Shown: positions 17,171-64,000 of the stretch, piece by piece
How the letters are laid out: every line of letters starts with the position of its first letter
Position numbering within the stretch: position 1 is the stretch's first letter
NCBI GenBank assembly: GCA_010909165.1
Contig: VJWM01000209.1
Span: 62,001-126,000 of the forward strand
Length of the DNA: 64,000 bases
Origin: Anthoceros angustus
Lineage: Eukaryota; Plantae; Anthocerotophyta
Direction of reading: 5' to 3'
Program-made: the position numbers and the translations under genes
The notes under the pieces: generated by a model
The model's database searches: none
Seen by the model: the letters and a program-made list of their open reading frames with translations, nothing else
Told to the model about the DNA's origin: nothing

Positions 17171-17423
17171 GTTGAGATTGCAGAGGCGGAGGTGGAGGTG
17201 GGAAGCAAGCCCTTGTGGTTCATGTAAGCCTCAGCCTCTGAGTGTTGTGCAAATGGAAATCTTCCATGGGTGCTGTGGAATTCAGGTGGCGGGGCTGCGG
17301 CATATGCATGCAGGTGACGGATTTGAGTGTGGAATTCAGGTAGCGTGGCCCTGGCTGTCAGCTGGCTGCATGCCAGAGCATGGCATGACACGGAAGCGTA
17401 AAGAGGAAAGGCAGAAAAACAAT

Positions 17424-31766: not shown

Positions 31767-32226
31767 CGGGGAGGCATGTCAGTCTTCAGCTGGTCAGGCG
31801 TCGTCAGCCTCTCGACGCTCTGACATGCCTGGCAATGCCACTGGAGGCTACACGTGTTTGCGACCCCCGGTGGATGTAAAACCAAAATCACGAGTCTGTC
31901 CAATGCCCATCACCCACGCATACACCGGCGGTCGAATGTGACACAACCTAAGAGTTTTCAACCACGATTCGGCCAGAGTGACTTTGACTGGTGGTACGAA
32001 AAAGCGTTTCATGACATCACAAGGACGTAAAAGCGTCCAGTGTCAGTGAAGTGCAGCTTGCGTGCCTGTAATACAGAATTCTGTGTAAGGTAACGTACAA
32101 GTGCAGCTTGCGTGCCTGTAATACAGAATTCTGTGTAAGGTAACGTACAAGTGCAGCTTGCATGCCTTGTAGACTTTGGGCCATAATATTATAGAAGTCC
32201 TAGAATTCCCCGTCCCTTAGGCTATA

Positions 32227-35200: not shown

Positions 35201-35611
35201 CGCGCCTCTTGAACGACCTCAGATCGTACCAGGTACGCTAATATGTAGTGAAGGTGAGATTGCACATGTCTGCATACATCACACAGCATACATGCATATG
35301 ACCCGTCCCATGTCCAATCCTGGAATTGCCACAGAAGGGGATATCGAAGTGAACAGTATGGTTGTTCATATGAGAGAGTACCCGGAGAAGAGCGAGGAGG
35401 AAGCGGACCACGACATCCGAGCTATAGTGGAATCCAACATGAAACAGCTGGTGCAGCATGTCTTCACTCCATCGGCCGTGCCCACACCCTGCAAACACGT
35501 CTTTTTGCACAATGCCATTGTCGCATATTACCTCTACGCAGACAACGACGGCTGGACCTCCCTCAGCCAAGATGCAGCACCACTTTAACCAGCTTCTTTT
35601 CAACCGTGTGA
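32227..35611 (+). CDS. Plant-type diterpene synthase, copy B; frameshifted in this assembly
   Basis: GAISGAYDAAWVAMVP, TTLLASLEG (LAS 33217-33225), GGVIPNHSPVD (33403-33414), DLDD (33571-33582), ILDDYTT (34563-34577), RLLNDLRSY and a C-terminal helix region ending LFQPV-stop after frame correction. Approximate introns follow GYPVSA (33633), SLYR (34085) and EALK. Confidence 0.93.
32301..32420 (+). repeat. 30-bp unit x4, in frame (ATVTRAPAAA) in the predicted transit peptide of terpene synthase B
   Basis: AGCGACTGTCACAAGAGCACCAGCTGCAGC occurs four times. Copy A has a single unit. Confidence 0.95.
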
Positions 35612-35749
35612 TTTGATGTACTTCAGCCACCTCTATCAACTTCACTGCAGAAGTCGTTACCACAAGTAGTAACCTAAGAAACCTGTGTACATTTTGGAAA
35701 TCTCACAGTTCAGCAAGTGTGCGCGTGCAAACCCTTTCCCTGCCAACCT

Positions 35750-36739
35750 CTTTTTCTGCAGACGGGAACCATATTCCATGTGTAGCGTCCCACGCTACCT
35801 GCCCTGTACACCTGCACAAGTTCCTCCGCCACACGTGGCAAGCCACCATGTACCGACTCAGCGAGGATTTTCAACAGGCCTGACAAGGCCTGCATTTGCT
35901 CGTCCACCAAGCCTTCCATCTCCTGCATATCATAGAGGTTCCCTTTGAATGCCCGATTTTTGCAGCCAGGGTGTGCCGGACATCTGGTACCCTGTCAGGC
36001 ACAGCCTGCGAGTAATATATGTCACAAAAGTTTATCTGCAGTCGGGAACCATATCCCATGTGTAGCGTCCCAAGGTACCTGCTCTGTACACCTGCACAAG
36101 CTCCTGCGCCACACGTGGCGAGCCACCATCTACCAACGCAGCGAGCATTTTCAACAGGCCTGACAAGGCCTTCATTTGGTCGTCCACCAAGCCTTCCATC
36201 TCCTGCATATCTTTGAGGTTCCCGTTGAATGACCGATATGTTGCAGCCAGGGTGTGCCGGACATCTGATACCCTGTCAGGCACAGACTTCGAGTATATAT
36301 ATGACACAATGTTATAATAGGGGAATGCACAAAAGTTTCCATCTCCCCCACACCTCCTACCTCTGGACCATTAGGTTGCTCAGCATTACCATGCAGCTTC
36401 CAGCTCGAGTAGACATCACGCGCATTATTCAGTAACGAGAGCGAGTACCTTGCAATCCGCTCATCTCCTACCACGGACTCTTTTGTGGCTCCTAAAGAGC
36501 AGGCAGCAACATCAGCCAACAGAGTTTCAAGTGTTTCTAACAAAAGCACCGGGCCTGTAGGTGGTGGGAGGAGACTCAGTCAATGACAGCTTCAACCTTG
36601 TCTCAACATCACGGATCTTTTGTACCAGCAATCCAGGTGTGTCAAGCGCATAGATGCTTGGATGTCTACCAACTTGGCACGACGCATGTTACCCACCTAT
36701 GTCAATTGCCGCAGCAAAGGCTATCACCACTCGCCTCAG
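35750..36739 (-). pseudogene. Unit-B copy of the RbgA/YlqF-type GTPase relic, truncated by a gypsy fragment
   Basis: Matches 13490-14422. It includes SVVGDERIARY and VSDVRHTLAATYRSFNGNLKDMQEMEGLVDDQMKAL..VYRAGTLGRYTWDMVP. Confidence 0.7.
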
Positions 36740-39047
36740 CCGGGACAAGCACTCCATCTTTGCCTACTGACGACCCGCAAGATGACTCACTGGATACCCA
36801 AGGTGTTGCACGGCTTCCGATGCGTAGACATAATCTCCAACTTGAACTTGCGCACCTTGGGTTTCCATGTCCCTCCTCGTGTGTAAGCATAGCGCGATTG
36901 ATCCACATGTTGCGCTATGGCAAGGTTCTCCATTGCCATGGGCATGATCCGTTTGAAAAGCTACGCCGCCTTTCCGGTCTCGTAGGCAATCATCCGCATT
37001 GCGCCAATCCACGGTGCTTGTAGCCTTGCTTGCCTCACGTTTGGCAAAATGGTTGTCGCCCATACAACAAGTAGTATGGTGAAAAATTGCTCAAGGTTGC
37101 TTGATTGCTCACCACTGCCCTAGCACTAGGTATGGCATCCCTTCATCCCATGTCTTGGTCATTTGTGAGACAATATTTGCGCAAGGCCGCTTGAAGGTGC
37201 ACCAAGCGCTCAAGAAGTCCATCGGCTTGAGGATGATCTCTCGGCGTCGTCGATGATCAATCAAGCTCTGTCAAGCAAGTCTTGAAATTCCCCGAATTCT
37301 TTGCCTGTCGGTGAGAACCTCGCACATGCTCCATATCGACTAAGAACGGAAGCCAAGAACGCCTTCTGGTAAGCCGAGAGTCACGCTTGGGTAAGATGGC
37401 AACCTCGCACCACTTGCTGAAATGCTCCACCATTAGCATGACATGCTTGTTTCCGATCTGGCGTCTCGGCATGTCCGGCATGAGATCCACACTCCACAGA
37501 AGAGTCCTCGGATCGGCGGTGAAGCACAACATCATTGGTTGTGAACCTTGCCTTCACTCGATCGCACACTCTACATTGCGACCGCCTTTCCACATCTCCA
37601 TACATCCTTGCCCAGAAGTGTGTGGGCCTGAGCATGATGTAGGTGCGCTTAGCACCAAAATGCCCTAAGCTTTCATGCACCTAGGTGATGAGTCTCACCC
37701 GGTCCTCCGGCTTGGGTACAATTCTATCTCCCACAGAATCACGGACATACATTATGTCCTCCTTCCAATAGTACCGAGCCACCTTCTCACGTAGCTTGGC
37801 CTGCTTCTGAGATGAAAGCCCTTGTGGCAATTCCCCAGACCTTAGGAAGGTCACCGCTATTGCATGCGCCCAGATGTCCCTGACGCACTCTACATACAAA
37901 GCGATGAGTGGAGGGCATCTTGACATCCTCATGCGGCATGGCCAACATGGTATCTGGACTACTCTCCCCCGGTTGCTCGTCATCGAATCTTGCAGCCCTG
38001 TAGTGTCTTCGTTCACGAGGTAGAGGATTCCTTGACAACCCATCAAGATTAGAGTGAACTCTACACTCGGTGTTCGATGACAAAGTCATACTCACGGAGA
38101 ATGAGAGCCCACCTCGCCGCCTTTCGTACGCTCACATCAACCAATGCAAGGGTTGATGGTGGTGATTAGTCGAAATTGATGTCCAAACAAATGCAGACGA
38201 AAGTGTCCGACCCACACCGCAAGACATTCTCCTTCATAGGCGAGTAGTTGGACTCACTTTGGTTGTTGCTCCGTGGCATAGGCAATGACATGTTCCTCTT
38301 CCTTGTCATTGATCTGCGCCAAGGCGCCTATCGTACTTGCTCCAATCAAAGTACGAACGGCCATCAAGTTTGGATGACCAAGAATTGGCGAGCTCATGAG
38401 TCTACCCTTCAACTCCATGAAAGCGACTCCTCCTCTTGAGTCCAACGCCAAGTCACCAACTTCTTCAACAAGTCATTCAATGGCGCAATCCGCTCATCCA
38501 TGGAATGAACTTCTAGTAACCGCCAAACCCAAGAATGCCCTCAACTTCGAGATGTCGTTTGGCACAGGAATGCGCGATTGCCTCCACCTTGGTGGCATGC
38601 GGCGAGATCCGTCGGCGTGATCCAATGACCCAAGTACAACACCTTATCCTCTCCAAATCGACACTTCTGGATGGGCCTTCAACCCACAAGCCCCAGCAAA
38701 GACCGTCAAGATGTTGTAGATGCTCCTCAAAGGTATTCTTGAAGATGATGACGTCATCAATGTAGCACTTGGCGAAATGCAAGTCCTTGAGCTCATTGTC
38801 CATGTACCTTTGGAACTGCGTTGGCGATGTCTTCAACCCAAATGGCATGTAATTCCACTCGTACAAGCAATCTCTACCCCAGAACGCCGTTTTCTTCTTG
38901 TCTTCTTCGGCGATCTCTACTTGGTGAAACCCTAGCCTCAAGTCCAATGTTGAGAAGAACTTGGCAGACCCAATGGTGTCGAAGATCTCTTCAGCCGTCG
39001 GCATGGAATAGTGGTCATGTGAGATTCGCTCGTTCAACGGCCGATAG
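36740..39047 (-). mobile_element. Ty3/gypsy pol fragment (RT, RNase H, integrase), truncated at both ends
   Basis: RT: YRPLNERISHDHYSMP..STLDLRLGFHQ..KTAFWG..MPFGL..CYIDD (38513-39047). RNase H region at about 38100-38450. Integrase HHCC HESLGHFG..C..C (about 37550-37680), MLMVEHFSKW and YAYTRGGTWKPKVRKFKLGDYVY (about 36810-36890). Confidence 0.9.
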
Positions 39048-42000: not shown

Positions 42001-42469
42001 AAAACATCGGTCAGGTCAACGCACACAAACAATGCTCATGCTTCAACTTTTGAAACATCTACGGAGTGCCTGCAACATGCTCGATGCTGCTGCTAAAGCA
42101 TGCTAAGGAGCCCTTTGCAAAGCCACGCATGTGGGACTTCGTGCGGGAGGGCGCATGCTATCACCACGGGATCTCACCATGTGGTGATATTACGTGATGA
42201 TCTCCATAAGATGGCATGCTTTTGCCACAGAATGTTGTGGCAGCGTTATGCGATTTACTGCGTGCGCGAGTTCTTTGTTGCGTCTTTGCGCTGCGGTTTG
42301 CGCATCCTTCAGCTATGCTTTGAATCATGCGATTATGCGTACCTTGATTATGCGCATCTTTGTGTGCATGCCACATTGTTACTTCTACAGAGCAGGGAAA
42401 ACAAATTGATACCAACCTTTCAGTATAAGCGATTGATTTCCTACACAAAAAACGGAAAATGATAGGCGC

Positions 42470-45400
42470 GACCACTTGATGTGTTCTCTTGTTGATGCAG
42501 TAGGCGTGGCGCCTTACTCGAAGATTCTTTTGCTATCTACACACGGAGTGATTAGTTTGTTAGGAACTCTGATCACAACATGTGGCGTTCTTTGACGACG
42601 TGCGACTCTAAGTAAATTCAAAACCTGAGGACTGATCTTAATCTGGAGCTTTTGATACTGGAATCTTACCTTGAAGACAGATGAAAGCAGGCTGGTACAT
42701 GAGGCGTATGTGTGCGGTGGCAGCATAAGCGCTCATGACAAGGGCCATGTGCCATGCTAATCAAGGCGAAATTGCACTCACAACCACAGTTAAGATAAGC
42801 GTATTACTGGGCTAACAAAGCAGCGGTCTTAAAGGACAAAATGGGAGCGTCCTTGTCTGTCCGAGGCCACGAACCGTCATCCCTTTACCAAAGCTCACGG
42901 AAAAACCCTTGGGATCCGTGTGGCTACCAATCGAACAAACATCACAATCCGATTTTCTCGTGACCTATGCCCCTTTTATCTACCTCGCGCGGCGTTCTTG
43001 CTGAATCGCGGGCGCCGCGCCGGGCGCCGTGGCGCAATCCGAAATCGTGCCATTGCCATTGCCCGGTCGTTTGGGCAATAATGCGCCGTGACTCACCGGT
43101 CGATTCGTTCCCTTGATGCCCGTGTCTTCACACCGGTCACACATACACATATCGCACGCACATACATGCTCACGGAACACATACCATGCCGACCATGCGC
43201 ATGGTGCACACATTAACCCGGACATCGTAGGCACCAGTGTCGCGGTAGTCGGCGGTGGCATAGCGCTCATGACAAGGGCCATGTGCCATGCTAATCAAGG
43301 CATTGCACTCACAACCACGATTAAGATAAACCGTATTACTAGGCTAACAAAGCAGCGGTCTTGAAAGCAAAATGGGAGCGTCCTTGTCTGTCCGAGCACA
43401 AACCCGTCACTATCCCTTTACCAAAGCTCACGGAAAAACCCTTGGGATCCGTGGTACTGCAATCGAACAAACATCAACAATCCGGTTTTCTCGTGACCTA
43501 TGCCCCTTTTATCTACCTCGCGCGTTCTTGCTTTGAATCGCGGGCGCCGCATCGTGCGCTCAATCCGAAATCGTGCCATATTGCCCGGCTGCCGGTCGTT
43601 TGGGCAATAATGCGCCGTGACTCCACGATCGATTCGTTCCCTTGATGCCCTGTCTTCACACACCATTCACCACATATCGCACATGACATACATGCTCACG
43701 GAACATACCATGCCGACCATGCGCATGGTGCACATACACATTAACCCGGACATCTAGGCGCACCACGCCGTGTCGCGGCGGTAGCGGTGGCAACATAGCG
43801 CTCATGACAAGGGCCATGTGCCATGCTAATCAAGACGAAATTGCACTCACAACCACGATTAAGATAAACCGTATTACTAGGCTAACAAAGCGGCGGTCGG
43901 CCCCTTGCCAAAGGCGGTCACGGTATTCTGCGAGGCGGCACTTTGGCATTCAAATCCATAGAACCTACGATAAAACCTTGAAACATGCTATCGCGTAATT
44001 GGGGTTGAAGGTCGCTCATGCTCTGCGACCCATGGCCAACAAAGCGGCCACCGCCTTTCTTGAGATCAAAATACTCGTCCACATGCTTTTCCCGATCGCT
44101 TCTCTCTAGCTCGATGGCGAGCCATCAGTTCCTCTTCTTCGTCCTTTGTCGAGCTCGTTTTACCACAGCAGACTGGTCCATTCAACCCATTCACGTAGTA
44201 TTGTTTTCAATACCGGACGCATAAATCGCCAACATTGTTATTTAGCAAGTACCGGCATTGATCGGTTCATCCCATTCCGGAATCCACATGTAGACATGTA
44301 AGCAAGATAAAAGGCCCTTGGGTAGCCAATGGCATCGCCCGCTTTCTCCGATGCAAGTGGTGAGCCACACTTTCAAGCTACGCCGTCGGCGGGTTTCTCT
44401 CGTTGTTGTAAACCAATCCTTCTTGAGGCCGGTGATCAAAACACGGTGCATGAATAGGTGATGCTCCAACTGGCAGCTCCCTCGATGGTCCGGACAAATG
44501 TCATCTATTCGCCCATACGCAAGCTCAAACAAATCCACAGCGATCATATGGGAAGTTCTCGATGTTACATGTCTCATGATGAGACTCCACATATAGCAAA
44601 AGCGGAAAATGTTAAGCGCGACCACTTGATGTGTTCTACTGTTGGTACGAGGCGGGCGTGACTGCCTTACTCGAAGATTCTTTTGCTATCTACACACGGA
44701 GTGATTAGTTTGTTAGGAACTCTGATCACAACATGTGACGTTGCTGACTGACACGTGCCTGACTCTAAGTAAATTCAAAACCTGAGGACTGATCTTAATC
44801 TGGAGCTTTTGATACTGGAATCTTACCTTGAGGCAGATGACGGCGGTACATGAGGCGTATGTGTGTGGTGAGCACCAGCGCTCATGACAAGGGCCATGTG
44901 CCATGCTAATCAAGGCATTGCACTCACAACCACAGATTAAGATAAACCGTATTACTAGGCTAACAAAGCGGCGGTCCGGCGGCCAAAATGGGAGCGTCCT
45001 TGTCTGTCCGAGCACAAACCCGTCACTGTCCCTTTACCAAAGCTCACGGAAAAACCCTTGGGATCCGTGTAGCTGCCCAATCGAACAAACATCGGCAATC
45101 CGATTTTCTCGTGACCTATGCCCCTTTTATCTACCTCGCACTTTTCGGCGTTCTTGCTGAATCGCGGGCGCCCGCGGGTGGCCAATCCAATCGTGCCATA
45201 TTGCGGTCGTTTGGGCAATAATGCGCCGTGACTCCAGATCGATTCGTTCCCTTGATGCCCATTGTCTTCACACATTCACACATACACCACATATCGCACG
45301 CGACATACATGCTCACGGAACACATACCATGCGACCATGCGCATGGTGCACATACACATTAACCCGGACATCAGCTACGCGCCGTGTCGCGGCGGTAGCG

Positions 45401-45600
45401 GTGGCGGCATAAGCGCTCATGACAAGGGCCATGTGCCATGCTAATCAAGGCGAAATTGCACTCACAACCACGATTAAGATAAACCGTATTAGGCTAACAA
45501 AGCGGCGGTCGGCGGCCCCAGCAAAGGCGGTCACGGTATTCTGGCGAGCACGCATTCAAATCCATAGAACCTACGATAAAATCTTGAAACATGCTATCGC
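42470..45600. repeat. Complex tandem array of a roughly 430-bp core and roughly 105-bp flanking module; the core recurs at 55907-56340 (candidate LTR)
   Basis: The module GCGCTCATGACAAGGGCCATGTGCCATGCTAATCAAG starts near 42728, 43262, 43798, 44878 and 45413. The core CAAAATGGGAGCGTCCTTGTC...GGACATC occurs at about 42838, 43368 and 44985, and again at 55907 in the same orientation. Confidence 0.8.
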
Positions 45601-46972
45601 GTAATTGGGGTTGAAGGTCGCTCATGCTCTGCAATGGGCCCGCCAACAAAGGCACCCGCCTTTCTTGAGATCAAAGTACTCGTCCACATGCTTTCCCGGC
45701 GCTTCTCTCTAGCTCGATGAGCCATCAGTTCCTCTTCTTGTCAGCGAGCTCGTTTTACCACAGCAAGACTGGTCCATTCAACCCATTCACGTAGTATTGT
45801 TTTCAATACCGGCACGCAAATCGCCAACATTGTTATTTAACAAGTACCGGCATTGATCGGTTCATCCCATTCCGGAATCACATCGTAGACATGTAATAGA
45901 TAAAAGGCCCTTGGGTAGCCAATGGCATCGCCCTTTCTCCGATGCAAGTGGTGAGCCACACTTTCAAGCTAGTCGGCGGGTTTCTCTCGTTGTTGTAAAC
46001 GAAATCCTTCTTGAGGCGGTGATCAAAACACGGTGCATGAATAGGTGATGCTCCAACTTTGGCAGCTCCCTCACGATGGCGGGTCCGGACAAATGTTTGT
46101 CTATTCATACCTCGCCTCAAACAAATCCACAGTGATCATACGGGAAGTTCTCGATGTTACATGTCTCATGATGAGACTCCACATATAGCAACATAGCTCG
46201 AGAATGTTTACGGCCTTTGGTTTCTGGATTGTATTTGCGGACCAAGGAACCCGCCACTTGTCCTCCCAAGGACATTCGAAATTGAGGAACACTATCTTTG
46301 CGATCTTGACAAGTTTTGCAGTGTAATCCGCCTCTGGATCCATAACAAGCCAACTATCCTCACGAAGGTAGGTGATTCTGACTTGCATAATGACTCTGGC
46401 AATAGCGTGCCTCTTGGCAATCGGTGACACCACCGCATGAGTCAATTCCCTTAGCAGCAAAGCAAGCGGACCACGCTATGCGGCAATGAATGTCGGTGCT
46501 TCGATTCACCATGGCGCCTTAACAACTCTTCACGGGAAAACTCCCACGCTCTCACGTTAGCTAGGCCTTCCTTTCGATCGTCCACGGCCTCTGATGCCGC
46601 GAGATCGCACACAAGCGGATCGGCTGTCTTGAAACACGGCAATTGCACCAATCGATGCTTGCGCCTTTTACCGCTGCTTGCTCCTTGAGATCGGTGGATC
46701 GCCTTGTTGGCGACGACAATCCCACGAGTTGTGCAATCCTCAGTTGGGCTATGACCGGCCGTCGGTGCTTCGCCGCCCCAAGACCTCTTGTCCTCCACCG
46801 TACTTGTCCCTTCACCACCAGCCACACCGTGGCGAAACCCACTTTAGACAAGGGCTGGTTCTTCAACAAATCTCACACTCTCCCTCGTGTCATACCCTTG
46901 ATCACCCTTCACTCTCCACCGCAGCGCGTTTGTTGCCGGACAACGGCGGCCGGGCTTTTGTGGGTAACCCTA

Positions 46973-47175
<203 letters not shown>

Positions 47176-50100
47176 CAGCTGGTGGCCTCACGCTTGTGGT
47201 TGCGTCCTTGTGTCAAGGTTGGGTAGGTGACAAGGCGCGGATGCCGCATGTGCTCTTTGCATCGGCGACCATCACATCCCTCAATTCAATTACACCTTGC
47301 TCTCCGTCCTTTTCTGGCGTAAGATTAAGCGACTGTCTGGCGTCTAAGGTCGGAATGATCGATCTTTGTAAATACGAAATCTCCACTTCAAACTTTCTTG
47401 CTTTTGGTTTCCACGAACCACCTCTTGTGAAGCATACCTAAGTTGATCCGGTCTTTGTGCTATGGCGGTTGTCCATCGCCATTGGCATTACCCGTTGGAA
47501 TAACCGTTCTCTGTTGCAACTCGAAAGGCACACCTCGGGATCTGTGCCCGATTCAACGGCTTGGGTATGTGTCATACAATGTTTGGCATCACGCGTTTGA
47601 CCGAACATGATGTAATATGGGCTGAAGTTACCCAAGGCCGCTGTCGCTTATCCGTAACCCAATGCCACATATGGCGGCAACTCATCCCAACAACTAGGCT
47701 CAACTTGTGCGGTTTGCGGCGAATCCTTGAAGGTTTGAACCAACGCTCCGCCAACCCGTCGACTTGTGGATGATCTCGTGATGTCACGTGATCAATCGGG
47801 CTACGGTCAAGCGGTGCGAAACTCACCTCGAATTCATTGCCACAGTGCATCAATACTTGACTCTCCCATACCTACTAAGAACACTGCAAGAAGGCTCGTC
47901 TTTGTGTCTTTGTGAGCTCACCGGAAGGAAGGCTAGCTCAACCCACTTTGAAAAGTGTTCTATCATGAGCATACGATGTCGATTGCCACCGCGTGGCAGC
48001 TCGGGCATCAAGTCTCGGACCATCGAAGAAAAGCCCCACGATAGGTAATGAGTGCGGCATGACATCTTGACTATTAAACGGCTTTACGGCATCACTGGCG
48101 CCTTGGCAACCACCTTCTCCACGTCGGCATACATACGGACCCAGTATGTGTTCTTAAGCATGTGATGCGTCCGTTTAACACCAAAGTGGCCAAGCGTTTA
48201 TGCACCTTGGTCACCGGCGCTTCATCTTCCATAGGTGGAACTTCTTTGAGAATCCGTGATCGTTTACGAATACCTTCGTCATGGCTATATCTTATTTTTG
48301 TGTAGTTTCTTGGCGTAACCATGTCCGGCCCGGCCACATGCCCTTATTGCGGCGGTGCATGGCTTCTTGGTGTTTCCATATGTCTCGCCCTCCTTGACGA
48401 TTGCCCTCCACCTTTCTTGACGGACATTAATGCCATGTAGCTGGGCAAACTTTGTGTGAGTCCAATCGTGCCTTGCTTATCATATCTCTTTTGTTACTGG
48501 GTTCGGTGAGCCATCGGCATTGAGATGCACCTTGCCCTTTCGATGCGATTTTGTCATTAAAGCGGTGCCCACCTAGCAAGCTTTCCGCTCGACTTCATGT
48601 TCGTCATTAGCCAATGTAGTGGTTGATGGTCTGACAATGGAAGCTCCGTCAAACAAATATACGAAATGCAACACGCCCTGCGCTAAGCATTCGCCTTCAT
48701 AGGACGAATAATTTGCTTCTTATTGTTGGACCTACTTGCGTGTCGACAACCGCTCCGCCAACCCGTCAACTTGTGGATGATCTCGTGATGTCCGTGATCA
48801 ATCGGGCTACGGTCAAGCGGCGAAACTCACCTCGAATTCATTGCCACAGTGCATCAATACTTGACACTCCCATACCTACTAAGAACACACCGCAAGAAGG
48901 CTCGTCTTTGTGAGCTCCTCACGGAAGGAAGGCTAGCTCAACCCACTTTGAAAAGTGTTCTATCATGAGCATACGATGTCGATTGCCCCGCTTGGTAACC
49001 GCAGTGCATCAAGTCTACGGACCATCGAAGAAAAGCCCCACGATAGGTAATGAGTGCGATGACATCTTGACTATTAAACCCGGCTTACGGCATCACAAGC
49101 GCCAGCAACCACCTTCTCCACGTCGGCATACATACGGACCCGGTATGTGTTCTTAAGCATGTGATGCGTCCGTTTAACACCAAAGTGGCCAAGCGTTTAT
49201 GCACCTTGGTCACCACCGCTTCATCTTCCATGGGTGGAACTTCTTTGAGAATCCGTGATCGAATACCTTGCCGTCAGTAACTATATCGGCTTATTTTTGT
49301 GTAGTTTCTTGGCGTGACCATGTCCAGCCCACATGCCCTTATTGCGGCGGTGCATGGCTTGGTGTTTCCATATGTCTCGCCCTCCTTCACCGATTGCCCT
49401 CACCTTTCTTGACGGACATTAATGCCATGTAGTGGGCAAACTTTGTGTGTGAGTCCGTCGTGCCTTGCTTCATATCTCTTTTGTTGCACACGGGTTCGAG
49501 CCCATTGAGATGCACCTTGCACCTTTCGATGCGATTTGCACATCGTGAAAGCGGAGTGCCCACCTAGCAAGCTTTCCGCTTAACTTCATGTTCGTCATTA
49601 GCCAATGTAGTGGCTGATGGTCCGTGACAAGCTGGAAGCTCCGGCCAAACAAATATACCCTGAAATGCAACACCGCCCACACTGCTGCTAAGCATTCGCC
49701 TTCATAGGACGAATAATTTGCTTCTGCTGTATTGTTGGACCTACTTGCGTACGCGACAACCCGCTCCTTCCCCTCTTCATCTGTTTGTGCCAACACTGCT
49801 CCAATCCCGGCTGCACTCCAGTCCGTATATAAGATGAAAAGTTTGTCAAAGTTGGGCCTTCTGAGCATTGGTCTCTCCGTCAACGGTTTTTAGCTCTGCC
49901 ATGCTTGTTCTGCGCATGACCCCACGCCCGTGGGCACCTTTCTTGAGCAAGTCATACTGACACTGCGGGTTCCACTCATGTTTCGATGAAGCGGCGATAG
50001 TAGTTGACAAGCCCGAAGGCCCTCAAGGTGGCAACATCTTTGGCACAGGCATAAGGTTCTTGCTGCACCTTGGCCAAGCGCACCCACAGGACAATCTTAT

Positions 50101-50989
50101 GTCCCAAATACTCTATCTCTTTGTAGGCAAACTTGCACTTTTGGGATGTGCTTTCAAACCCGACTTGGCCAATCTCTGCGGCAGGACTTCCGGTGTTCAA
50201 GATGTTCCCCCAATGTGTTACTAAACACCAGAATATCGTCTATGTAGCACCTCACAAAGGGCAACCCTTGTAGCTCTAAGTCAGCCACCCGCTGAAAGTA
50301 TATAGACGCGTTCTTCAAGCCGAACGGCATCGTTTCCCATTCCCAAAGTTGATCCTTGCCCCAAAACGCTGTCTTACACTTGTCTCCCTCTTCAATGACA
50401 ATCTGGTTGAACCCAGATCGAAAGTCTAGTGTAGTGAAATACTTGGCTTGCCCTATGGCATCAAAAATTTCATCAGGAGTGGGCATGGGGTACCGCTCCA
50501 TAGGTGTGACTTCGTTCAGCGATAATCCCGCACATTCGCTTGTCCTTCCATTCACCATGCTCATCCTTCTTCAGCGGCAACAAGTGGCGGCGTATTGAGA
50601 GGTTGACTTCCTAATTAGCCTCGCCAACTCCTTGCATCGCTTGTCCACAATCTCCCTCCATGGGACTCAACTTATGCCTTCGTGAAATATGGGCTCTTGG
50701 TGGTGGTGGTGATCTTGAATTTTACTTTGTCATCGCCCGGCTCATTCAGCTTACACCGGTTGTGTTGCGGCATACCCGAATCTTTTGCCGATCGACCTCC
50801 TCGTTCTTCACAAATCTACCACTCATGTGTTTCCCTTAGATCATTTTGTCCCACAGGTGGCGTTTACATGTTGCGGCGCTCATTCGCGGTGCCCTTGCTT
50901 GGTTCTCTTGGAAAACCGTCGCCTTGACAAGCACACGGCAAAAGCTATTATCCATGTCACTTGGGTGGCCATGCCTGACTAACAACCAT

Positions 50990-51880
50990 TATGGCGATTA
51001 AGGTCAAAAGCACCACCGGTTTGCATCGATATGCTTGAATACCGTGCGTGAAGGTACACTTTGCCGAATCCCATGGCCCGTTCGTTCCTTATGGTGGGTT
51101 CCCGATTTCATTCCGTTCACATCCGGCACCATGCCATCCCCCCCGAGCATATGATTGTGCGGTCCTTACGGTGTGGGCGAGCCCTTGCGGCACCTACTCG
51201 TTGGTGGAAGGCGGTCTATCCTTCTGCGTCTTGTTGAGCGTCGCCCTTCCTCCAGAATTTCATCCACATACTTTTCCACCGGAATCGTCAGTACTTGATG
51301 CTGCCTGAGAATTTCCACTTCAGCCATGTTTGTCCAAAAGCTCCGTACTCGGTGAGCATATGACCCAGTCTGGGCTGCATCGATGATGAACTCTTCACCC
51401 AACCATCGCCTGAGCTGCTCATAGTCCCTCCGGACGTTCTCACGTTTATCAAATGCCCCACATACATTCTCCAAAATGTACCAACAGCTTGGATTGCGCA
51501 ACTGCACTTCCCTTAGGATTCGGATCACCTCGGCGGCCATCTCTACACCGTTGCCATAACCGCGCCCGGCTCTGGAAAAAGTTCGACACTCCCATCCTGC
51601 GATTAGCATGTCCACAGGACACCTGATTGCCTCAAGCTGTCGTTTCCCCACCAACATGATATCCAGGGGCAATCTGCTTTGACAACCCTTGATTGCTTCG
51701 ATGCTCAGCAATTCAGGATACTTCCTTTGCAACGACAATTCTTGCTTTGGCCACGCGTGTCTTCTCATCCGACTCACGCCGTGTATTTCTTTACCATAAG
51801 CCACTTTTCAACACGGCTTCCGGCCAGCTGGCGATGCCGCATAGCTCCATGAGGTGGATCCACGACGTCCGCTTGCCCTC
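50990..51880 (-). CDS. C5-cytosine DNA methyltransferase catalytic domain, DNMT3-like, embedded in gypsy pol
   Basis: Motif I WIHLMELC(G)GIA (51833-51862), motif IV PVDMLIAGWECRTFSRAG, motif VI WYILENV and motif VIII GSYAHRVRSFWTNM, with IV, VI and VIII all in ORF 51166-51804. Downstream are ERAMGF (51066-51086) and GGAFDLN (50997-51017) at the positions expected for motifs IX and X. Confidence 0.88.
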
Positions 51881-54800
51881 GTACTACTTCATTGTTGATC
51901 GCAGCTCCGCCTTATTCGATGTGGCGGTCTTGCGCGTGACCCTCCGGCGTCCACTGGCCATCTGCCATGCCTTGGATTGTCCTTTCCGGACATGCTCTCT
52001 TGCCAACGCTAGTGAAAGCATGGGAGTGTTCTTGATATACATACATCCCCTTACTTGCCATTCGTCGCACTTCTTCCCTCATCGTTCTTGGGTTTCTTCC
52101 CATATCTCGCTTGTCGCGATTTACGCCACACATCTTGTGAGTGCCATCATGGCCCACGCTCATCACGTCGGCGCATGTCCGGTATCCGGCCACATCGTGA
52201 AATCTCCCTCTTGCCATCGCGGCTGTAAGCGCTCACGGGTGTAATGGGTCCACCCCCATCGCCGGACCATGAGTGGCATCGGCAAGCAACACGTCGTAGT
52301 TTACGGCATCGGACACCAAGCATCGTGCCGATGGCGGTGGAATCTTGATCGGGTTTGAGCTCAATCCGTATTGGATCGCGGGTTATGCCCATCACTGCTC
52401 CTTAGTCCTGCGGAGGTGGTGATGCGCACCTCGCATGGCTTTAGCTTACTTCCATACGGTGGCGCTGCTGCCCCGGTAACACCGGATCCGCGGTGTCCAC
52501 TGCGTCAGTGCGAAACCATTAACGGTGATTTCCGGTTACGGTTGTTCACCATGGATGCCTCCTTTGCCTCGCTGTTGGTTTCGGATGCTCTCCTCGTAAA
52601 CTAGCGGTCCGGGCACCACGCCTCCTTCGAGACTCCTTCCTTATCAAGCTTGCATAACTTGCTTGAAAGGTTGTGCTCTTACTCCCGGATCGCAGCTCAC
52701 CATGGGTGCATCCATTGCCCGTTCAAGGAGGATTTCGCACTTGACGCCTTCTTAGCTTGCGGCGACACTCCTTCGTTCTCCTCACTCTGCACGAAGGACT
52801 TGGGCATCTTGAGTTGGTTTCTTTCCTCGACTTCTTTCTTTGAGAATTCCCCAAGCTCATGCGTCCAGCGCCCTTGGGGCCATCAATGCGTATACTTAGT
52901 GTCCGAGTCGTATTCTTGGCCAGGCGCACTTCCCTTAGATTCGGATCACCTCGGCCATCTCTACGCTGCGTTGCAACCGCCTCGGAAAAAGTGACACTCC
53001 CATCCTGCGATTAGCACGTCCACAGGACACGATTGCCTCAAGCGCCGTTTCCCCACCAACTAACATGATGTCCGGGGCAATGCTTTGACAACCCTTGATT
53101 GCTTCAACGCTCAGCAATTCAGGATACTTTCTTTGCAACGACAATTCTTGCTTTGGCCACGCGCGTGTCTTCTCATCCGACTCGGCGCGTGTATTTCTTT
53201 ACCCGCAAGCCACTTTTCAACACGGCTTCCGGCCATGGCGATGCCGCATAGCTCCATGAGGTGGATCCCACGGACGTCCGCTTGTACTACTTCATTGTTG
53301 ATCGCGGCTCCGCCTTATTCGATGTGGCGGTCTTTGCGCGTGACCCTCCCACGCCATCCGCCATGCCTTGGATTGTCCTTTCGAACATGCTCTTGCCAAC
53401 GCTAGAGCATGGGAGTGTTCTTGATATATACATCCCTTACTTGCCTTCGTCTGCACTTCTTCCCTCATCGTTCTTGGGTTTCTTCCCATATCTCGCTCGC
53501 GCAGCCGCCATTACGCCGTGAGTGCCATCATGGCCCCACTGCTCATCACGTCGTCGCATGTCCAGCGGTATCCTGGCCACATGCGTAAAATCTCCCTCTT
53601 GCCATCGCGGCCTGTAAAACGCTACTGAGTGTAACGGGTCCACCCCCATCGCCGGACCATGAGTGGCATCCGCACCGAGCAACACGTCGTAGTTTCTGGC
53701 ATCAGACACCAAGCATCGTGCCGATGGCGGTGGAATCTTGATCGGGTTTGAGCTCAATCCGATTGGATCGCGGGTTATGCCCATCACTGCTCCTTAGTCC
53801 CTGCGGAGGTGGTGATGCGCACCTCGCATGGCTTTAGCTTACTTCCATACAAAGCGCTGCACTGCTGTAACACACCGGATCCGCGCCGGTGTCAACTAAC
53901 ACGCATTCGGTGCGAAACCATTAACGGTGATTTCCCGGTTCTGGTTGTTCACCATCGCGATGCCTCCTTTGCCTCGCGCTGTTGGTTTCAGATGCTCTCC
54001 TCGTAAACTAGCCACCTGTGCACCACGCCTTCCGAGACTCCTTCCTTATCCAAGCTTGCATAACTTGCTTGAAAGGTTGTGCTCTTACTCCCAGATCTCG
54101 CAGGCTCACCATGGGTGCATCCATTGCCCGTTCAAGGAGGATTTCGGCACTTGACGCCTTCTTAGCTTGCGACGACACTCCTTCGTTCTCCTCACTCTGC
54201 CTGAAGGACTTGGGCATCTTGAGTTGGTTTCTTTCCTCGGACTTCTTTCTTTGAAGAATTCCCCAAGCTCAAGCCGGCCCGCCGCCTTGGGGCCATCAAT
54301 GCGTATACTTAGTGTCCGAGTCGATTTTCGACGGGCGACTCACTCTAGTCGCACTCATGCCAATTGCCAACTGTTCTTGCAGCCTGTGTACTTCGCTAAG
54401 CAAGGCTTTCCGGGTGTACCCTACTGTCTGCCTAGCTTTATCGGCGACCCGCTCACCAGACGCCCTAGGCTTAAACTCGGGGTGGGCCTGCCAGCACGCT
54501 GCCTCCGTGTGTCCTGTCTTGGCACAAGCTCTGCACGCCTCCTTTTCCTTAGCTCCACCGGGTCGATATTCGCACTCGTAAGCTTTGTGCGGCCCCCTGC
54601 AGCGCAGGCACTTCACCGTTGCCTTGGTGGTGGCTGCACTGTTGACTGCGCTCTCCTTAGCGGGTGAACTCCTCTGCATAGCGTTTGCCTGCGTCGTCTC
54701 CCGAGGCATATTTCTTCCTTGAAACCGGTGCGTGTTCGAGGCAGGTTGATGCGTCCTGACCAGGTTATGTTCTTCCCAGTACGCGCTGGTCACAGCATCA

Positions 54801-56857
54801 CCTTTCATGACCCTTTCTGCCATCTCGTAGGCTGCTCCAACTCATAATCAGCACCGTGCATCATGTGAAGGAAATTGGCAATCACTCTCCTTTACTGCCG
54901 GGCGGCTATGTATATTTGGGCGGCTTCCCGCATCGTCTTCACCCGTGTGTCCTTCACCAGTTGCCTTAGCCTCAGATAGGCGGACCTGAGAGGTTCATTG
55001 GGCTTGATGACGAACTTTGATAGTTCTTGGATCTTTTCTATGGAGGACACCGGAAACATCTCCCCAAACTTGGCAAACATTTCATCCACCAAATACGTGA
55101 TTGCATCACCTTGCAGGGAGCTTGACGCCTCTTCCTCTTCGCTTCCCTTTGACGCCTTCTTGGCCCTTCTCGCCCTCGCCAAAGTACGGGCATCCTGCAA
55201 AATTTGGTCCTTACAGTCCCTGTAACAAGTCAGCGCTTCTCCTGCTAGAAAAGTGCTCATTTTTCTCAGTGCCATCTCGGGTGTGAACTCAGACTTGTAT
55301 TTGAGCACCATCTCATCGATTGCCACACGAACTTCTCTTCAAAGTCGGCAAGAGACATGCTACGTCTTGCCGGTGAACACATCGTTTTCTTGGCCAGGCT
55401 CGTACTCCATTCTTGCTTATGACACTTTCTTCAAATGCGATGGGGCGAATGGGACTTTGACTCCACTCGAATCGACCTCCTAATCGGTAGGCGATGGATC
55501 TTGAATGGCGGATGAGCTTCTTGGATGGGTGTATTCTCGTTTGTCCACCGGGCGCAAGAACACCATCACCCTCTCACTCTCTTCCCTGCGAGAGACTATA
55601 TGCGGCATTCCATCAAAGTGAGTGTTGGTGCCTCCTTGATCCGATCCGCTAGAGGCCGACTTGTCAATCACTTGTCCCACAATCTGCACTTGCAGTGCGG
55701 GTTCTAGTTCCGCCAAGGCGGCTAGGTGAAGAATGGACCGACCCGCATAAAACAGCATGGAATAATCTATAGCATTCTCAGCAATCTCCACCATTGACTT
55801 ATCTCGAGTGGGTCACGGTTCTTCCGTCGGCGTTCCGCCTGGATGCTCCGCCGCTCTTTCACGCGCACCACTGCCAGGCTGAGCTTTGTAAAGGGATTGC
55901 TGATGTGCAAAATGGGAGTCGTCCTTGTCTAGGCACAAACCCGTCACTGTCCCTTTACCAAAGCTTCCGCACGGAAGAACCCCTTGGGATCCGTATGGCT
56001 GCTCAATCGAACAAACATCAGCAATCCGGTTTTTCTACGTGACCTATGCCCCCTTTTATCTACCTACGCACTCGGCGTTCTTGCTGAATCGCGGCGCCCG
56101 CGCCAGGCGCGGCTCAATCGAAATCGTGCCATATTGCCGCTGCGGTCGTTTGGGCAATAATGCGCCGTGACTCCACGATCGATTCGTTCCCTTGATGCCC
56201 GCCTTCACACACCATTCACACATACACCACATATCGCACATGACATACATGCTCACGAGACACATACCATGCCGACCATGCGCATGGTGCACATACGATG
56301 TTTGGACATCGTCGCACGCACCGCAGCGTGTCATGACATATGCAAGCTCAGCGTACATAAAGCGCAACCGCTATTAAGCGGCGATGCGATTCTTGCTCTG
56401 ACAAGGCGATCTACACATGGCGAAAGGAAAGGAAAGGATGTCGATCGCCATTGCGGTAGTTGAAGGTTGAGGCTGGGCGTTAGGCTGCGATCCCAAGCAC
56501 ACCGCTTACGTCCAAGATGCAGATACCGCTTGCGTCCGGTCAAATGGCAAGTCATGCTTCTGCAACGGCCATGCCCGCGACTACTGTTGCGGAGGCATGC
56601 TTCTGTAACTACTGCATGCGTGATGCAGGCTTCTAAGAGCAGTTGAAGGAAGGACTTACGCTTGTAGGAGTTCTTGTGGTGGGACCACAGCTTCACCCTG
56701 TTGTAGCAGTGTCATTGTTGTGACCTAGGTGAAAACGGCAACGATTAATCCGATGCCATAAACGTCGGATCAAAGACAAGGCGCCGATCACTTGCTAGCT
56801 TCGGGTGATGCGCATTAGCCCGACTTTGAAGGAAACAACCAAGGTAATAAGGTCAGT

Positions 56858-59229: not shown

Positions 59230-62200
59230 TAGATGTTTTTCGATGGACAGAATTCTGCCATTGATTATACACAGCTTAGGTGTGGTAGTCTCACGATTCG
59301 AGTTAGCGAATTATGCGGAGAAGAGCCTGCATACGTCTGGAGCCGTTTGTGGATAGAGGCAGTGGATGTACTTTTCTGGCTAGCTGGTTGGGCTAACGGT
59401 GGAAACAATTTGCCCTTTGACAACATCCGCAAAGTCGTGCATAGGAGAAGTAACCATTGATGGTGTTCACGAGATCGGGGTGGGTGGCGAAAGGACACCG
59501 CGCTGCCTTCACGGAGAAGTGCACGACGCCTACTACTCGCCATTCAAGAGGACAGGAACAATACGAGACAACGCCATACAAGGAGACAACACGATTGGAG
59601 CGGAGAGTCTGCAAGAATGGAGCTTGAGTTCACACCAAGTAAGAACGATGTCTTCACAGAAAACATGGAAGCATGTCTCTTGCGATTTCGAGGAGAAGTT
59701 TCGTTGGGCAATGGCGGAAAACAAGATGAAATACAAGGACGAGTTCACTCGGAGGATGGCGTTCATGAAGATGTCATCCTACCTTGCGGTGAGGCTCTAA
59801 TGTATTACGAGATGAGAAGGTGATCCCAAGGTGGCCGAGAGAAGAGAAGGCAAGGCAAGAAGAGGGCTGGTTCGACCGCACTTCATCGACGAGGACAAGC
59901 TCGAGCATCCGTGGACTTGATGTTCGCCAAGTTAACCACCATGTTTCCTGCTACCGTGAAAAGATCCGAGGCTCGAGGTTTTCTTCAGCCTAACGAGACA
60001 TTGCGTGCATCTTACCTCAGTTGAAGGTTACGGTGGAAGACACGGATGTCAAGGCGATGAGGGAGGCTGAGATCTTCATGGCGCATTGCCTGCATAGAAG
60101 GAAGGTGATGGACTCACGCATGGAGCGATGGGAGAGAGATATCGGTTGATAGACGCCCTCAAATTCTTGAGAAGGTGCTCAAAGGAGATGCGAAGCCGCT
60201 TACTTGGAGGATCACGAGTCGTGAAGGGCCCTTCGCAAAGACGGGTCCGGAGGACACGGAATTCGAGTTTGTTCCAAGGTACCAAGACGGAGCAAGCACG
60301 ATCCTCGGGACATGGCAAGACCACATGTGCCGAAGGAGAGGCTAACAATGCAGTCAAGCGGTGTGAAGTGTGGCGAGCATCGATGCGGAGCGCATATGCT
60401 CAATGCGACTACAAGCCAGGTGGTCCGAAGGGCAAGGAAGCCTGTAAGTCTTGTGGCAGATGGGGTCATATGGAAGCAGCGTGTTGGGAAGCTCATCCAG
60501 AGCTGAAGCCCAAGCTTGCATCAGCCGAGAAGGAGAAGGGCAAGGGCCCAAGCAGAGGATTTTGTTCTCTGACTCCGATGATGATGAGGCGTTTGGCATG
60601 ATGGCGGTGCGCAAGAAAAAGAAAAAGGCTGTTGCTGACTTTGGTGAAGGCGTCACTGCGAAGGGAGTGCGAACGAATCGACCAAGATGCCGAGAGTTTC
60701 CGCAGTCGAGAAAACTCCACGGCTACGTATGGTGTCAAGATCGGTCGAGACGTTGAGGCGTTGCCGACAAGGCCATGGAGGTGCTGCAGAAGTCTTGTGG
60801 ATCGTACAGGAGTCAACATGGCAAAACAGTGAAGGGCAACAACTTCAAAAACATCATGCGAGAATGGCTGAGAAAGGAGCTTGAATCCGGGATCTCTTCC
60901 TAGTATGGCGGTTGTGTGGCGAGCATCCGATGCGGAGGAGCGAGGTGAAGGAGGTGTTGCCATGATTGATTGATAACACGGACGGCACGTGACCTTTGAT
61001 GGCTATGCTCCAAAGAACGCATTGTAGACACGAGCGGATCCGATCTTCTTGGGAGCACGGTGCAAAAGGCACTAAAGTCACGGACACAAGCTCGCCCGAG
61101 CGTGAACATCACCACCGCAGTACCAAGGCAGTCGGGAATGACGAGGAGGCCCGTGAAGATTGAATTGAAGCTGGCACGAAGGATGCCAAGATCGTTGAAG
61201 TGAGATGTTTGGTCAAGGCAAAGACATATGATGTCTTGCCGGGGTCGGACGGAACTCACCGTCCCCGCCATGGGGTTGATCCCTTGCACTGAAGCTTTCT
61301 GCACTATTCTCGTGGAGAGGAGATTTCACGCATGTTGCACGAATTCTAAGGATGAATAGGAGTGGTGGCAAGAGCGGACGAGGATGACGGCGCCATGATT
61401 GCCCAGTGCTCAGTGAGCATCGACATGAGATGTGGGAGGAAACGCAGAGTTATCCTCTCGGAGATGCCGGGCCAAGAGAGCGTAAGGGTGTGCTTAAGGT
61501 TGTGCCGTAATATTTGGATCAAGCGAGGGTTCGAGAGAACCGGTGAAGGAAGGAGGATCGACCGTGGAATCTCACGGACACATGTCCCGAGAGGTCGATC
61601 CGGTATGAGGCCTCGCCAAGTCGGAGATCGACGATCGACGATGCTCTAGTACGATGGAAGGTGGGTCAAGGCATCCATTTGTTGGAGCTCGCCGGAATCG
61701 CAGCGGGCCCGGAAGCGTTGCAGCGAAGGCCAAGATCAATATACTGCGTGGAAAAGGATGAGAAGATTCGAGCCGCTAGGGTCGAATCTCGTGTTCGCAA
61801 GCGATCCAACACTCATCGAGCGAGGAAGCGCTCGAGGTCCAGAGCTGCCCACGACGTGAACTGGTTGGGAAGCGGCTAGAAGCCTTGTCAAGCCCGGTGG
61901 ATATGCCGATCGCGGGATGGGAATGCAAGACATTTTCGACGCAGTGAGGCAAAGGTGAAGGCGTTTTGTTGGCGAGCTCGCATTTAATCACGCGAGAAGT
62001 CCAGATTGCGAATCCACAATGTTGGTACATTTGGAGAATGTGTGCGACCATGGACAAGCGTCCGTTAGGGCCACATGAAGAGATTCGGCGTGGTTCGGCA
62101 ATGAGTTGATCATGGGCGCGCGTACGGCTCATATGCAGCCGGCTTAGCGATTCTTGGACAAATGTGGCTGGACCGGAGGTGCCTGACAGAATTTGACAAC

Positions 62201-62315
62201 TCAAGCGGAAGGTTGTGGATGATATCCTAGAGTTGGGAAGGTGCTCACAACAGTGAAGAGGATGGACAAGTTGCCATTTACCACCGTGAATCGAGTAGGG
62301 GAAGCCGGAAGGCGT
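59230..62315 (+). mobile_element. Second, diverged gypsy element: gag - protease - DNMT3-like domain, truncated before RT
   Basis: The gag is homologous to the minus-strand element (NSAIDY, MKYKDEFT..KMSSYLA, CKSCGRWGHMEAAC). Protease IVDTSGS (about 61021-61045). Methyltransferase GIHLLEL(.)GIAAG (61670-61710), VDM.IAGWECKTFS (61897-61940), WYI.ENVC (about 62022-62045) and GSYA..R..FWTN (62125-62165). Confidence 0.82.
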
Positions 62316-64000
62316 AAAGTGGCCTCTGCCCGGGCCTCGGCCTTATTGGTTTTCGGGGGTTGAAGGTAGATTCTAGAGAATTGATCTTTTGGTCATTTTT
62401 ACTCAATATAGTAAATTTCATTACAATCGAGTAAAAACCATGCCATATGGGGTAAAAAGAATCCACCTCCAATGTTACAAACAGAGCAGTAGGGTAAAAA
62501 AATGACCACCAAGTGAACATCAGGTACTCTAGTGGAAGCTCTTTCTAGAAATCCCACCAAAATCGCTAATCTGGCAAAAACATTTTCTGTTAAGTAATAT
62601 TCATGCGGATCCAGGATTCATGCACTTACAACAAAGCTTTCCAAACAACCTCCCAGTAGTCCGTTACGTCTTCCAACGTAAGGCACTTCCTGAAACGGTA
62701 AGACCGAGAATCAAACTATGCACAAACACGAAAGCAAGACCGAGAATCAAACTATGCACAACGGATAACAACACGAACAATGCATTTGTAACACAAAAGC
62801 AAGGTCAAAAATTTAAAAGCGTTAAGCGCACTGGCGTCTCCCAATGCATCACGTCACCACATACGGCGCTTCACGAGCGAACAAGGCGGCGTTAGACTAC
62901 AAAAAGTAGGCATCGAGAGAACACCATGCACGGTGAAACAAAAGCGAGAGAAAGTCACGAGACAACACATAGTCACGAGACAACGAACATATCTTGAGCA
63001 CGAGGTAAACAAACCATGCGATCGCAAACTCGGGCGTCAATGGACTTCTTGCAACAAAACTAAGCCGAACTGAACACACTAACCGCGGCATAGAGCATGA
63101 AGCGAGCGACATATATAAAAAGCGGCAGCAAAGGACCGAGACAACCGCGACAAGCAAGCGTGGCGGAAGTCTGGCCTGAGAGGGGCCGCAAGCGCCAACA
63201 ACAATCGAGGCGAAAACAAGCGCGTCACAAAGCGGAGACCAGCCAAAAGACCACATCGGACAAAGTGCAAGCGGAAGCACGATCTTGGCCTTTACAAGAA
63301 CACCAGATATGTCGCAAGACACATGCGGGACACTACAAAACTAGGAGGACAAGAACACATGCAGCGCAATTACAAAATGAGAAGGAACCCAAAGCGCCGC
63401 ACAAAACAACACGGAAAAGACCGGCCTTCAAGCTCGGAACCTTGGCCTTGGCGAACCTATAACGTTCGAAATGAAAAGCGTTGAGCGAAATACAAAATGG
63501 CCTTTGGAAGGACCGAGATAGAAGCCAATACAAGCAAACGTGACAAGGAAATGCAGTGCCGCACACAAAGGCAACGCATCAACAACAATCAAAGGCGGTA
63601 GAAAACAAGCGCACAACACGAGAGCAGACAAAAGCGACATCAAACAAAGGTGCAAGCGTAGCGGATCTTAGCCTTTAACCTCCGAAACTTAGCCGTGGAA
63701 ACCAAGCAACCTTGGCCGGGAAGAGGCGGATGGCCTCTTGGATGAAAAGCGAATCGCCACGAACAACAACTACTAAACTAGACCGGACCTTGGCCTTGGA
63801 CATACCTATCCACCGCAATAAGCACGCAAACCAAGATGATCTTGGCCGGACATACCTATCCCTGCAATAAGGACACAAACCAAGATGACCTTGGCCTTCG
63901 GACGTGCAATATACGAAGAAAAACGAAGCAAACACAGGAAGACCTCGGGCTTCGGACGTTCAAAACTAAGACAAAGAACAAACCAAAAGACACAGGAACC

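Follow-up and report, generated by a model that had tools for sequence, protein, structure and literature searches.

Does the stretch of DNA analyzed here hold a transposon that carries its own DNA methyltransferase? Methylation normally silences transposons, and transposons equipped with a de novo methyltransferase reverse this usual picture. The window (the whole stretch of 64,000 nucleotides, positions 62,001 to 126,000 of contig VJWM01000209.1) had previously been read from its letters alone. That sequence-only reading proposed that ordered cytosine-5 (C5) methyltransferase motifs at 50990-51880 belong to a DNMT3-like enzyme, encoded on the gag-pol strand between the protease (PR) and the reverse transcriptase (RT) of a Gypsy retrotransposon. 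Our follow-up indicates that the region is very probably the methyltransferase (MT) of a decayed Ty3/Gypsy element of the published Gypsy-DNMT3 kind, in which a DNMT3-type MT is placed in Gag-Pol between PR and RT and the full order is gag(CCHC)-PR-MT-RT-RNase H (RH)-integrase (IN)-PHD, represented here by two copies of two lineages: element 1 (E1) on the minus strand and element 2 (E2) on the plus strand.

The motif strings and coordinates proposed earlier were borne out by translation, on the minus strand, which the sequence-only reading had left unstated. C5-methyltransferase motifs I, IV, VI, and VIII and the C-terminal motifs follow one another in order over approximately 51871-50997, whereas the three plus-strand frames of 50900-52000 yield no methylase-like product. 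An antisense open reading frame (ORF) at 51693-52244, considered as a coding alternative, was rejected, being without a Pfam match. The E1 motifs are scattered across three reading frames, and the gene is therefore broken as assembled. Its longest unbroken piece (212 amino acids, 51804-51166, minus strand) nevertheless matches PF00145, the check that had been proposed, with 23.8 bits against a gathering cut-off of 22 (E 3.5e-5); relatives score 20 to 54 bits. Frameshift-aware alignment to the relatives P0004, P0013, P0053, P0070, and P0022 gave outer bounds of 51066-51871 at 34 to 37% identity, with one to four frameshifts and zero to two stops, depending on the reference. A word-indexed protein search with the MT piece returned no match, while HMMER, run exhaustively with the 212-amino-acid piece against 1.84 billion representatives, retrieved 441 proteins at E<=1e-3; of these, 167 reached E<=1e-10, and the top match (7.6e-33) was only 46% identical. 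The PF00145 match and the 441 relatives together exclude chance as an explanation of the methylase call.

To place the domain among the C5 methyltransferases, sequence profiles and predicted structure were compared with the PDB. The single MT sequence gave weak matches (DNMT3A, E ~0.08). When the piece was aligned with 19 short relatives and the resulting profile (A1) was run, the catalytic domains of DNMT3A, DNMT3B, and DNMT3C were matched at E ~1e-25 and ~94 bits, compared with E 1e-13 to 1e-9 and at most 53 bits for DRM (via the permuted half alone), E ~1e-9 and 41 bits for M.HhaI, and E ~1e-5 for DNMT2; DNMT1 was not among the matches listed. An AlphaFold2 model was made of the near-complete relative P0004, on a 24-relative alignment, rather than of the broken window gene (mean predicted local distance difference test score, 93.2). 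Its best 50 Foldseek matches in the PDB were all DNMT3A, DNMT3B, or DNMT3C (E 2e-20 to 1e-16; TM [target] up to 0.81). Taken together, the profile, the motif order, and the fold matches establish that the family is DNMT3-like in sequence, motif order, and fold, as had been supposed.

The resemblance to the host enzymes has its limits. DNMT3A, DNMT3B, and DNMT3C are the best profile and fold matches and share the motif order and a short target-recognition region, but identity is ~23%, and motif IV, canonically Pro-Cys, reads Glu-Cys in most transposon members. Unlike host DNMT3, the transposon domain forms part of a retrotransposon polyprotein; Pfam reported no PWWP or ADD domains in the relatives scanned. 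Plant DRM, a distant DNMT3 relative, was second best in the profile search; DRM motifs are circularly permuted, such that profile positions 7 to 135 align to the C-terminal part of DRM, whereas the order in the window is unpermuted, from I to X.

The surroundings of the domain are those of a Ty3/Gypsy element (Table 1). Domains mapped by tblastn, by alignment, and by the protease active-site motif place the MT on the gag-pol strand between protease and RT, and Pfam, tblastn, and alignment give the RT-RH-IN order, in agreement with the sequence-only reading on both counts; the Pol order PR-MT-RT-RH-IN, with integrase after RNase H, fits Ty3/Gypsy. The RT-RH part is 52% identical to that of P0022 over 364 codons. 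At the 5′ side, gag is split between ORFs 55326-54892 and 54823-54296, which lie in different frames and thus imply at least one frameshift. The Retrotrans_gag match is weak (14.8 bits against a cut-off of 24.1), and the Cys/His knuckle is visible in the translation. In self-blastn, no stretch upstream of gag other than repeat A has a counterpart downstream of pol, and neither flank of A has a match in the 3′ array, whose two tandem units hold two to three and one to two copies, respectively, of a ~535-bp unit akin to the 5′ A repeat. The ends of E1 are not fixed to the base.

The arrangement is repeated in E2, which lies head-to-head with E1. The two are collinear through gag, protease, and methylase at ~59% DNA identity and 42 to 52% protein identity (gag, ~59% and 42 to 48% at the DNA and amino acid levels), a divergence that marks E2 as a different lineage of the same kind. 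The E2 MT is 50% identical in amino acids to the E1 MT ORF and matches relatives by tblastn at E 3e-4. Downstream of it, no RT, RH, or IN was found; the copy ends inside the methylase. Relative to the E1 ORFs, E2 carries four frameshifts and two stops in gag, two frameshifts in the protease, and six frameshifts and two stops in the MT, the C-terminal end of which is missing. Past the truncation point, 62400-64000 is strongly A-rich on the plus strand (AT skew, 0.35).

Relatives from elsewhere have the same domain order. Architectures were counted in the best 150 of the 441 representative proteins, 16 of which have a (PR)-MT-RT(-RH-IN) layout. They include P0022, a metagenomic protein with an uninterrupted 2188-amino-acid ORF of CCHC-PR-MT-RT-RH-IN; GAQ93235.1 (P0070) of Klebsormidium nitens, which has the PR-MT order and aligns over the whole MT domain; and proteins of Closterium spp. 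NIES-53, NIES-54, NIES-65, and NIES-68 (including locus L004), which share the layout. The gag-PR-MT-RT-RH-IN order of the window is likewise present in L002. A second layout, RT-RH-MT-IN-PHD, was found in 54 of the 150 (e.g., P0020, P0023, P0052, and P0105), a named member being the pol of the chlorophyte Scenedesmus sp. PABB004 (KAF8056149.1). Scanning JGI metagenomes with the single MT piece yielded no relative; scanning with the alignment yielded 80 loci, ~64 of them with the layout of the window (13 complete from PR through MT, RT, RH, and IN to PHD) and ~11 with the second layout (e.g., L058, L060, and L073-L076). None of the 80 resembles the window at the DNA level. A rough neighbor-joining tree of the family's MT domains groups the window piece into a clade of 33 leaves, of which 14 are of the PR-MT type and none is of the RT-RH-MT type. 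Because the order recurs in the divergent E2 and in many relatives, the MT belongs to the design of the family: its position between PR and RT is a family trait, not a separate insertion in a single copy.

The closest relative in every domain is a Logan contig (L001, run SRR33208241; RT, 69%; RH, 61%; MT, 45%). On this contig the MT (L001:3969-5030) lies between protease and RT but is inverted with respect to PR, RT, RH, IN, and PHD; no inverted repeats were found flanking the segment, and the inversion could be an assembly artifact or real.

Table 1. Coordinates of the two methyltransferase-bearing elements and their parts in the window
Feature	Position	Strand	Evidence or remarks
E1, outer bounds as traceable (5′ repeat, gag, PR, MT, RT, RH, IN, PHD, 3′ repeat array)	42448-56296	minus	tblastn with natural relatives, self-blastn
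E1 5′ repeat A, ~390 bp	55907-56296	minus	84-87% identical to 42837-43210, 43367-43737, and 44984-45355
E1 gag, broken (capsid-like N-terminal part and Cys/His Zn-knuckle region)	54296-55416	minus	ORFs, similarity to E2
1.4-kb tandem duplication, upstream unit (gag end, protease A, duplicated MT N-terminal fragment)	52926-54326	minus	88.3% identical to 51504-52914
Protease copy A	~54003-53540; D-T-G-A active-site motif, 53893-53882	minus	Aligns to protease of P0017, P0022, and L002
Duplicated MT N-terminal fragment	53257-52912	minus	2-4 frameshifts
1.4-kb tandem duplication, downstream unit (protease B and N-terminal third of main MT)	51504-52914	minus	Self-blastn
Protease copy B, active-site motif not intact	~52489-52171	minus	Alignment to relatives
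E1 DNMT3-like C5 methyltransferase, broken, motifs I to X unpermuted	50997-51871	minus	PF00145, frameshift-aware alignment, motifs
Motif I	51850-51830	minus	Translated string
Motif IV with catalytic Cys	51597-51574	minus	Translated string
Motif VI (ENV)	51477-51457	minus	Translated string
Motif VIII	51357-51328	minus	Translated string
Two C-terminal motifs common to relatives	51086-51063, 51017-50997	minus	Translated strings
E1 reverse transcriptase, broken	49985-50693	minus	RVT_1, 62.6 bits on ORF 50564-50154
E1 RNase H	49533-49889	minus	RT_RNaseH, 124.2 bits on ORF 49883-49470
1.0-kb tandem duplication, RH end and IN start	47741-49767 (units 48747-49767 and 47741-48756)	minus	88.5% identity
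E1 integrase, broken	47434-48247	minus	38-40% identity to P0022 and P0036 integrases; tblastn E 9e-25
E1 PHD-finger region, C-terminal to integrase, broken	47036-47482	minus	tblastn E 5e-6; 66/145 identical to L002 PHD-bearing product
E1 3′ repeat array, 3.8 kb	42448-46208 (tandem units 42448-44613 and 44598-46208)	minus	Self-blastn
E2, divergent 3′-truncated second copy, head-to-head with E1	59611-62370	plus	tblastx/blastn, collinear with E1
E2 gag	59611-60601	plus	Similarity to E1
E2 protease remnant	~61135-61360	plus	Similarity to E1
E2 MT remnant, motifs I, IV, VI, and VIII recognizable	~61634-62370	plus	Translation

Several observations weigh against this assignment or limit what it implies. 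The known relatives are distant (46% identity at best for the MT and 69% for the RT), and this low identity to all of them indicates that the window element's own family is unsampled. A canonical pair of long terminal repeats (LTRs) was not found in E1, and neither a primer-binding site nor a polypurine tract was identified; only ~390 bp is common to the 5′ side and the 3.8-kb 3′ array, and the ends are undefined. Motif IV of both copies reads Glu-Cys instead of the canonical Pro-Cys (51597-51574 in E1; 61915-61938 in E2), so that the catalytic competence of the lineage is not assured, and a yeast assay left it undecided whether the K. nitens enzyme is active de novo (PMC5890265). An uninterrupted MT frame able to yield an enzyme is absent from E1 and E2 as assembled. 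Apart from the MT itself, breaks in E1 amount to two to six frameshifts and zero to one stop in protease A and one to four frameshifts in protease B (both from weak alignments, the former varying with the reference), four to six frameshifts and zero to one stop in RT-RH, four to seven frameshifts and one stop in the integrase, and three to six frameshifts in the PHD region; tblastn also detects a second RH-like fragment at 48719-48443. Neither copy is able to make such a protein as the sequence stands.

How much of this damage is real? We suspect that the indel pattern is the signature of residual long-read consensus error. The differences within each repeat pair of the window are mostly indels of 1 to 2 bp, and gap openings equal or outnumber substitutions (79 versus 56, 49 versus 33, and 62 versus 42, and 41 versus 38 in an unrelated 22-kb duplication); 24 to 66% of the indels alter the length of a single-base run, and a host-type diterpene synthase gene in the window also shifts frame without introns. 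It is conceivable on these grounds, though unlikely, that the locus is less broken than it appears, most of the frameshifts being consensus errors in a young or even intact copy. The indel density is uneven, however: the duplicated MT fragment has ~4 frameshifts in ~290 bp, its partner is open over 639 bp, and the 1023-bp ORF of a Copia element in the window is clean. In-frame stops are present too, and 33 to 53% of the transitions between repeats fall at CpG, a bias that fits real decay by deamination of methylated CpG. Nor can indel errors explain the two tandem duplications within E1 or the truncated 3′ end of E2. We accordingly treat the window copies as relics, which record the presence and diversification of the family in this genome and from which no activity is expected.

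The Glu-Cys form of motif IV bears on the family as a whole. Among the 131 best relatives that could be scored, the catalytic Cys is preceded by Glu in 77 and by Pro in 43, and the Closterium proteins and P0022 agree with the window copies in having Glu. Together with the lack of detectable methylation by the K. nitens enzyme in yeast (PMC5890265), this could mean that the Glu-Cys module is non-catalytic and acts as a DNA-binding or regulatory subunit, in a role comparable to that of DNMT3L. We consider such a role improbable: the catalytic Cys, the Gln that follows it, the Glu of ENV, the Arg of motif VIII, and the Gly-rich loop of motif I are invariant or nearly so across the family, and the Glu form is maintained in long uninterrupted ORFs. 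Moreover, the authors of the yeast experiment call the K. nitens result inconclusive, human DNMT3B having likewise failed in that assay (PMC5890265).

The alternative that the MT is an accidental passenger in a single retrotransposon copy, either a host DNMT3 gene fragment or a separate insertion, can hardly be correct. All that speaks for it is that DNMT3 is a host gene family in streptophytes. Against it, the MT has the same position and strand in the ~50% diverged E2, and this arrangement is also found in a single 2188-amino-acid ORF, in proteins of Closterium and K. nitens, and in dozens of metagenome loci; no separate termini were seen around the MT stretch.

With the MT taken as an integral part of a Gypsy element, the locus can be compared with described systems. 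The methyltransferase-bearing retrotransposons for which the sequence-only reading cited de Mendoza et al. (2018) are indeed reported there. KnitGypsy-Dnmt3 of K. nitens is a Gypsy element whose Pol ORF includes Dnmt3, and selection on the K. nitens MT copies was reported (PMC5890265). The window element shares with it the Gypsy type and an unpermuted Dnmt3-type MT inside the Pol ORF. K. nitens GAQ93235.1, which may be one of the published KnitGypsy-Dnmt3 copies, is 34 to 36% identical in amino acids to the window MT and has Pro-Cys where the window has Glu-Cys. The published repeat layout is A-coding-B-A-B (Fig. 4c legend, PMC5890265). Clean split repeats of this form occur in the Closterium locus L004 (psl complex NIES-68, BQMA01000470.1, 9441-17082), where A (9441-9985) matches 16452-16977 over ~530 to 545 bp at 95% identity and B (16342-16447) matches 16977-17082 over 106 bp at 97% identity. 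In E1, A and the coding part are followed by two tandem units, each with A, a layout that is compatible with A-coding-B-A-B but not clean.

SymbioDIRS-Dnmt3 of Symbiodinium also has a Dnmt3-type domain inside a retrotransposon Pol, but belongs to the DIRS elements and has a tyrosine recombinase, whereas the window element is of the Gypsy type and has a DDE integrase. The authors who described SymbioDIRS-Dnmt3 take it to be an independent acquisition; the SymbioDIRS enzymes methylate CG de novo in yeast and are the only such enzymes for which this has been shown (PMC5890265). The Scenedesmus-type (type B) elements resemble the window in their homologous DNMT3-like domain, Gypsy-type RT, RH, and IN, and C-terminal PHD, and differ in having the MT between RNase H and integrase rather than between protease and RT. 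Chromoviruses and “EpiLTRs” are LTR elements whose Pol has gained chromatin-reader or DNA-methylase modules (bioRxiv 10.64898/2026.05.21.726589). They share with the window element a reader domain behind the integrase, but the reader in the window is a PHD finger, not a chromodomain, and the MT is DNMT3-like, not DNMT4-like; no adenine methylase was seen in the window element. The same 2026 preprint cites “streptophytes (Gypsy-DNMT3)” (bioRxiv 10.64898/2026.05.21.726589). A phrase search of the literature found no further paper describing the Gypsy-DNMT3 kind, and the literature searched held no description of methylase-bearing Gypsy elements in Closterium.

What such an element would do with a methylase can be sketched for intact members. 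The methylase would be translated within Pol and either freed by the element's protease or left linked to RT. Being produced together with RT and IN, and presumably co-packaged with them, it would be in a position to methylate new cDNA or element DNA around integration; as with DNMT3 enzymes, CG would be the most likely target. The PHD finger that follows the integrase probably recognizes a histone-tail state and may steer integration, like the chromodomains of chromoviruses.

The kind is already known from K. nitens, and the window locus adds a new, decayed member. The published streptophyte cases number one, and the window contributes a host that is neither Klebsormidium nor Closterium; together with the relatives, it shows a PR-MT-RT layout of wide distribution and old age, frequently accompanied by a PHD finger and in most cases with Glu-Cys as the catalytic motif. 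What may be new is a host with a land-plant-type diterpene synthase, the breadth of the family, the second layout in chlorophytes, the pairing with a PHD finger, and a motif IV that reads Glu-Cys. More tentatively, Gypsy-DNMT3 could be an old, diversified lineage that spans green algae and plants and has one architecture in streptophytes (PR-MT-RT) and another in chlorophytes (RT-RH-MT-IN-PHD), the streptophyte form of which reached, and split into at least two lineages in, a first embryophyte host, with most members having a PHD reader and a conserved Glu-Cys and possibly altered catalysis or specificity. Intact copies, if the genome holds any elsewhere, would supply transposon-borne DNMT3-type activity in a host lineage in which the function of DNMT3 itself is not yet settled.

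The host was judged from a neighboring gene. A plant-type gene resembling ent-copalyl diphosphate synthase (CPS) is present twice in the window (10400-12650 and 32600-35000, both on the plus strand). Its PDB matches are Arabidopsis CPS (E 9e-20), followed by other plant diterpene synthases. The matching pieces are collinear with Arabidopsis CPS residues ~11 to 260, but they occupy different frames and are not separated by introns; this points to a processed or decayed copy or else to assembly indels. The closest relative of the gene, at 62% identity, was found in run SRR33208241, which also holds the nearest relative of the retrotransposon. The three-domain terpene synthase family is regarded as land-plant-specific, and a land-plant host is therefore plausible. 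The sequence-only reading had taken the host to look like a land plant; this one gene suggests as much. The low identities indicate that the host is neither K. nitens nor a sequenced Closterium.

Both copies of the diterpene synthase gene lie in a large direct duplication (1-14422 versus 19632-36739; period, ~20 to 22 kb; 94 to 98% identity), which also contains 607-bp tandem units at 27496-29326 and one such unit at 5483-6092. Transposons are abundant in the window. A Ty1/copia element occupies 17000-20600 (minus strand) between the large repeats; RVT_2 scores 235 bits on its open 340-amino-acid ORF (19411-18389), and its RT is at best 51 to 55% identical to relatives. Another Gypsy-type element, with RT-RH-IN-PHD and of a different DNA family, lies at 36835-39046 (minus strand). 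No methylase was found upstream of its RT or elsewhere in the window beyond E1 and E2, and Rfam and tRNA scans of the window revealed no rRNA or tRNA genes. The adjoining 39 to 42.4 kb is AT-rich. The CpG observed/expected ratio has its window minimum in the Copia element (0.57); the two methylase-bearing copies, at 0.93 and 1.00, show no depletion.

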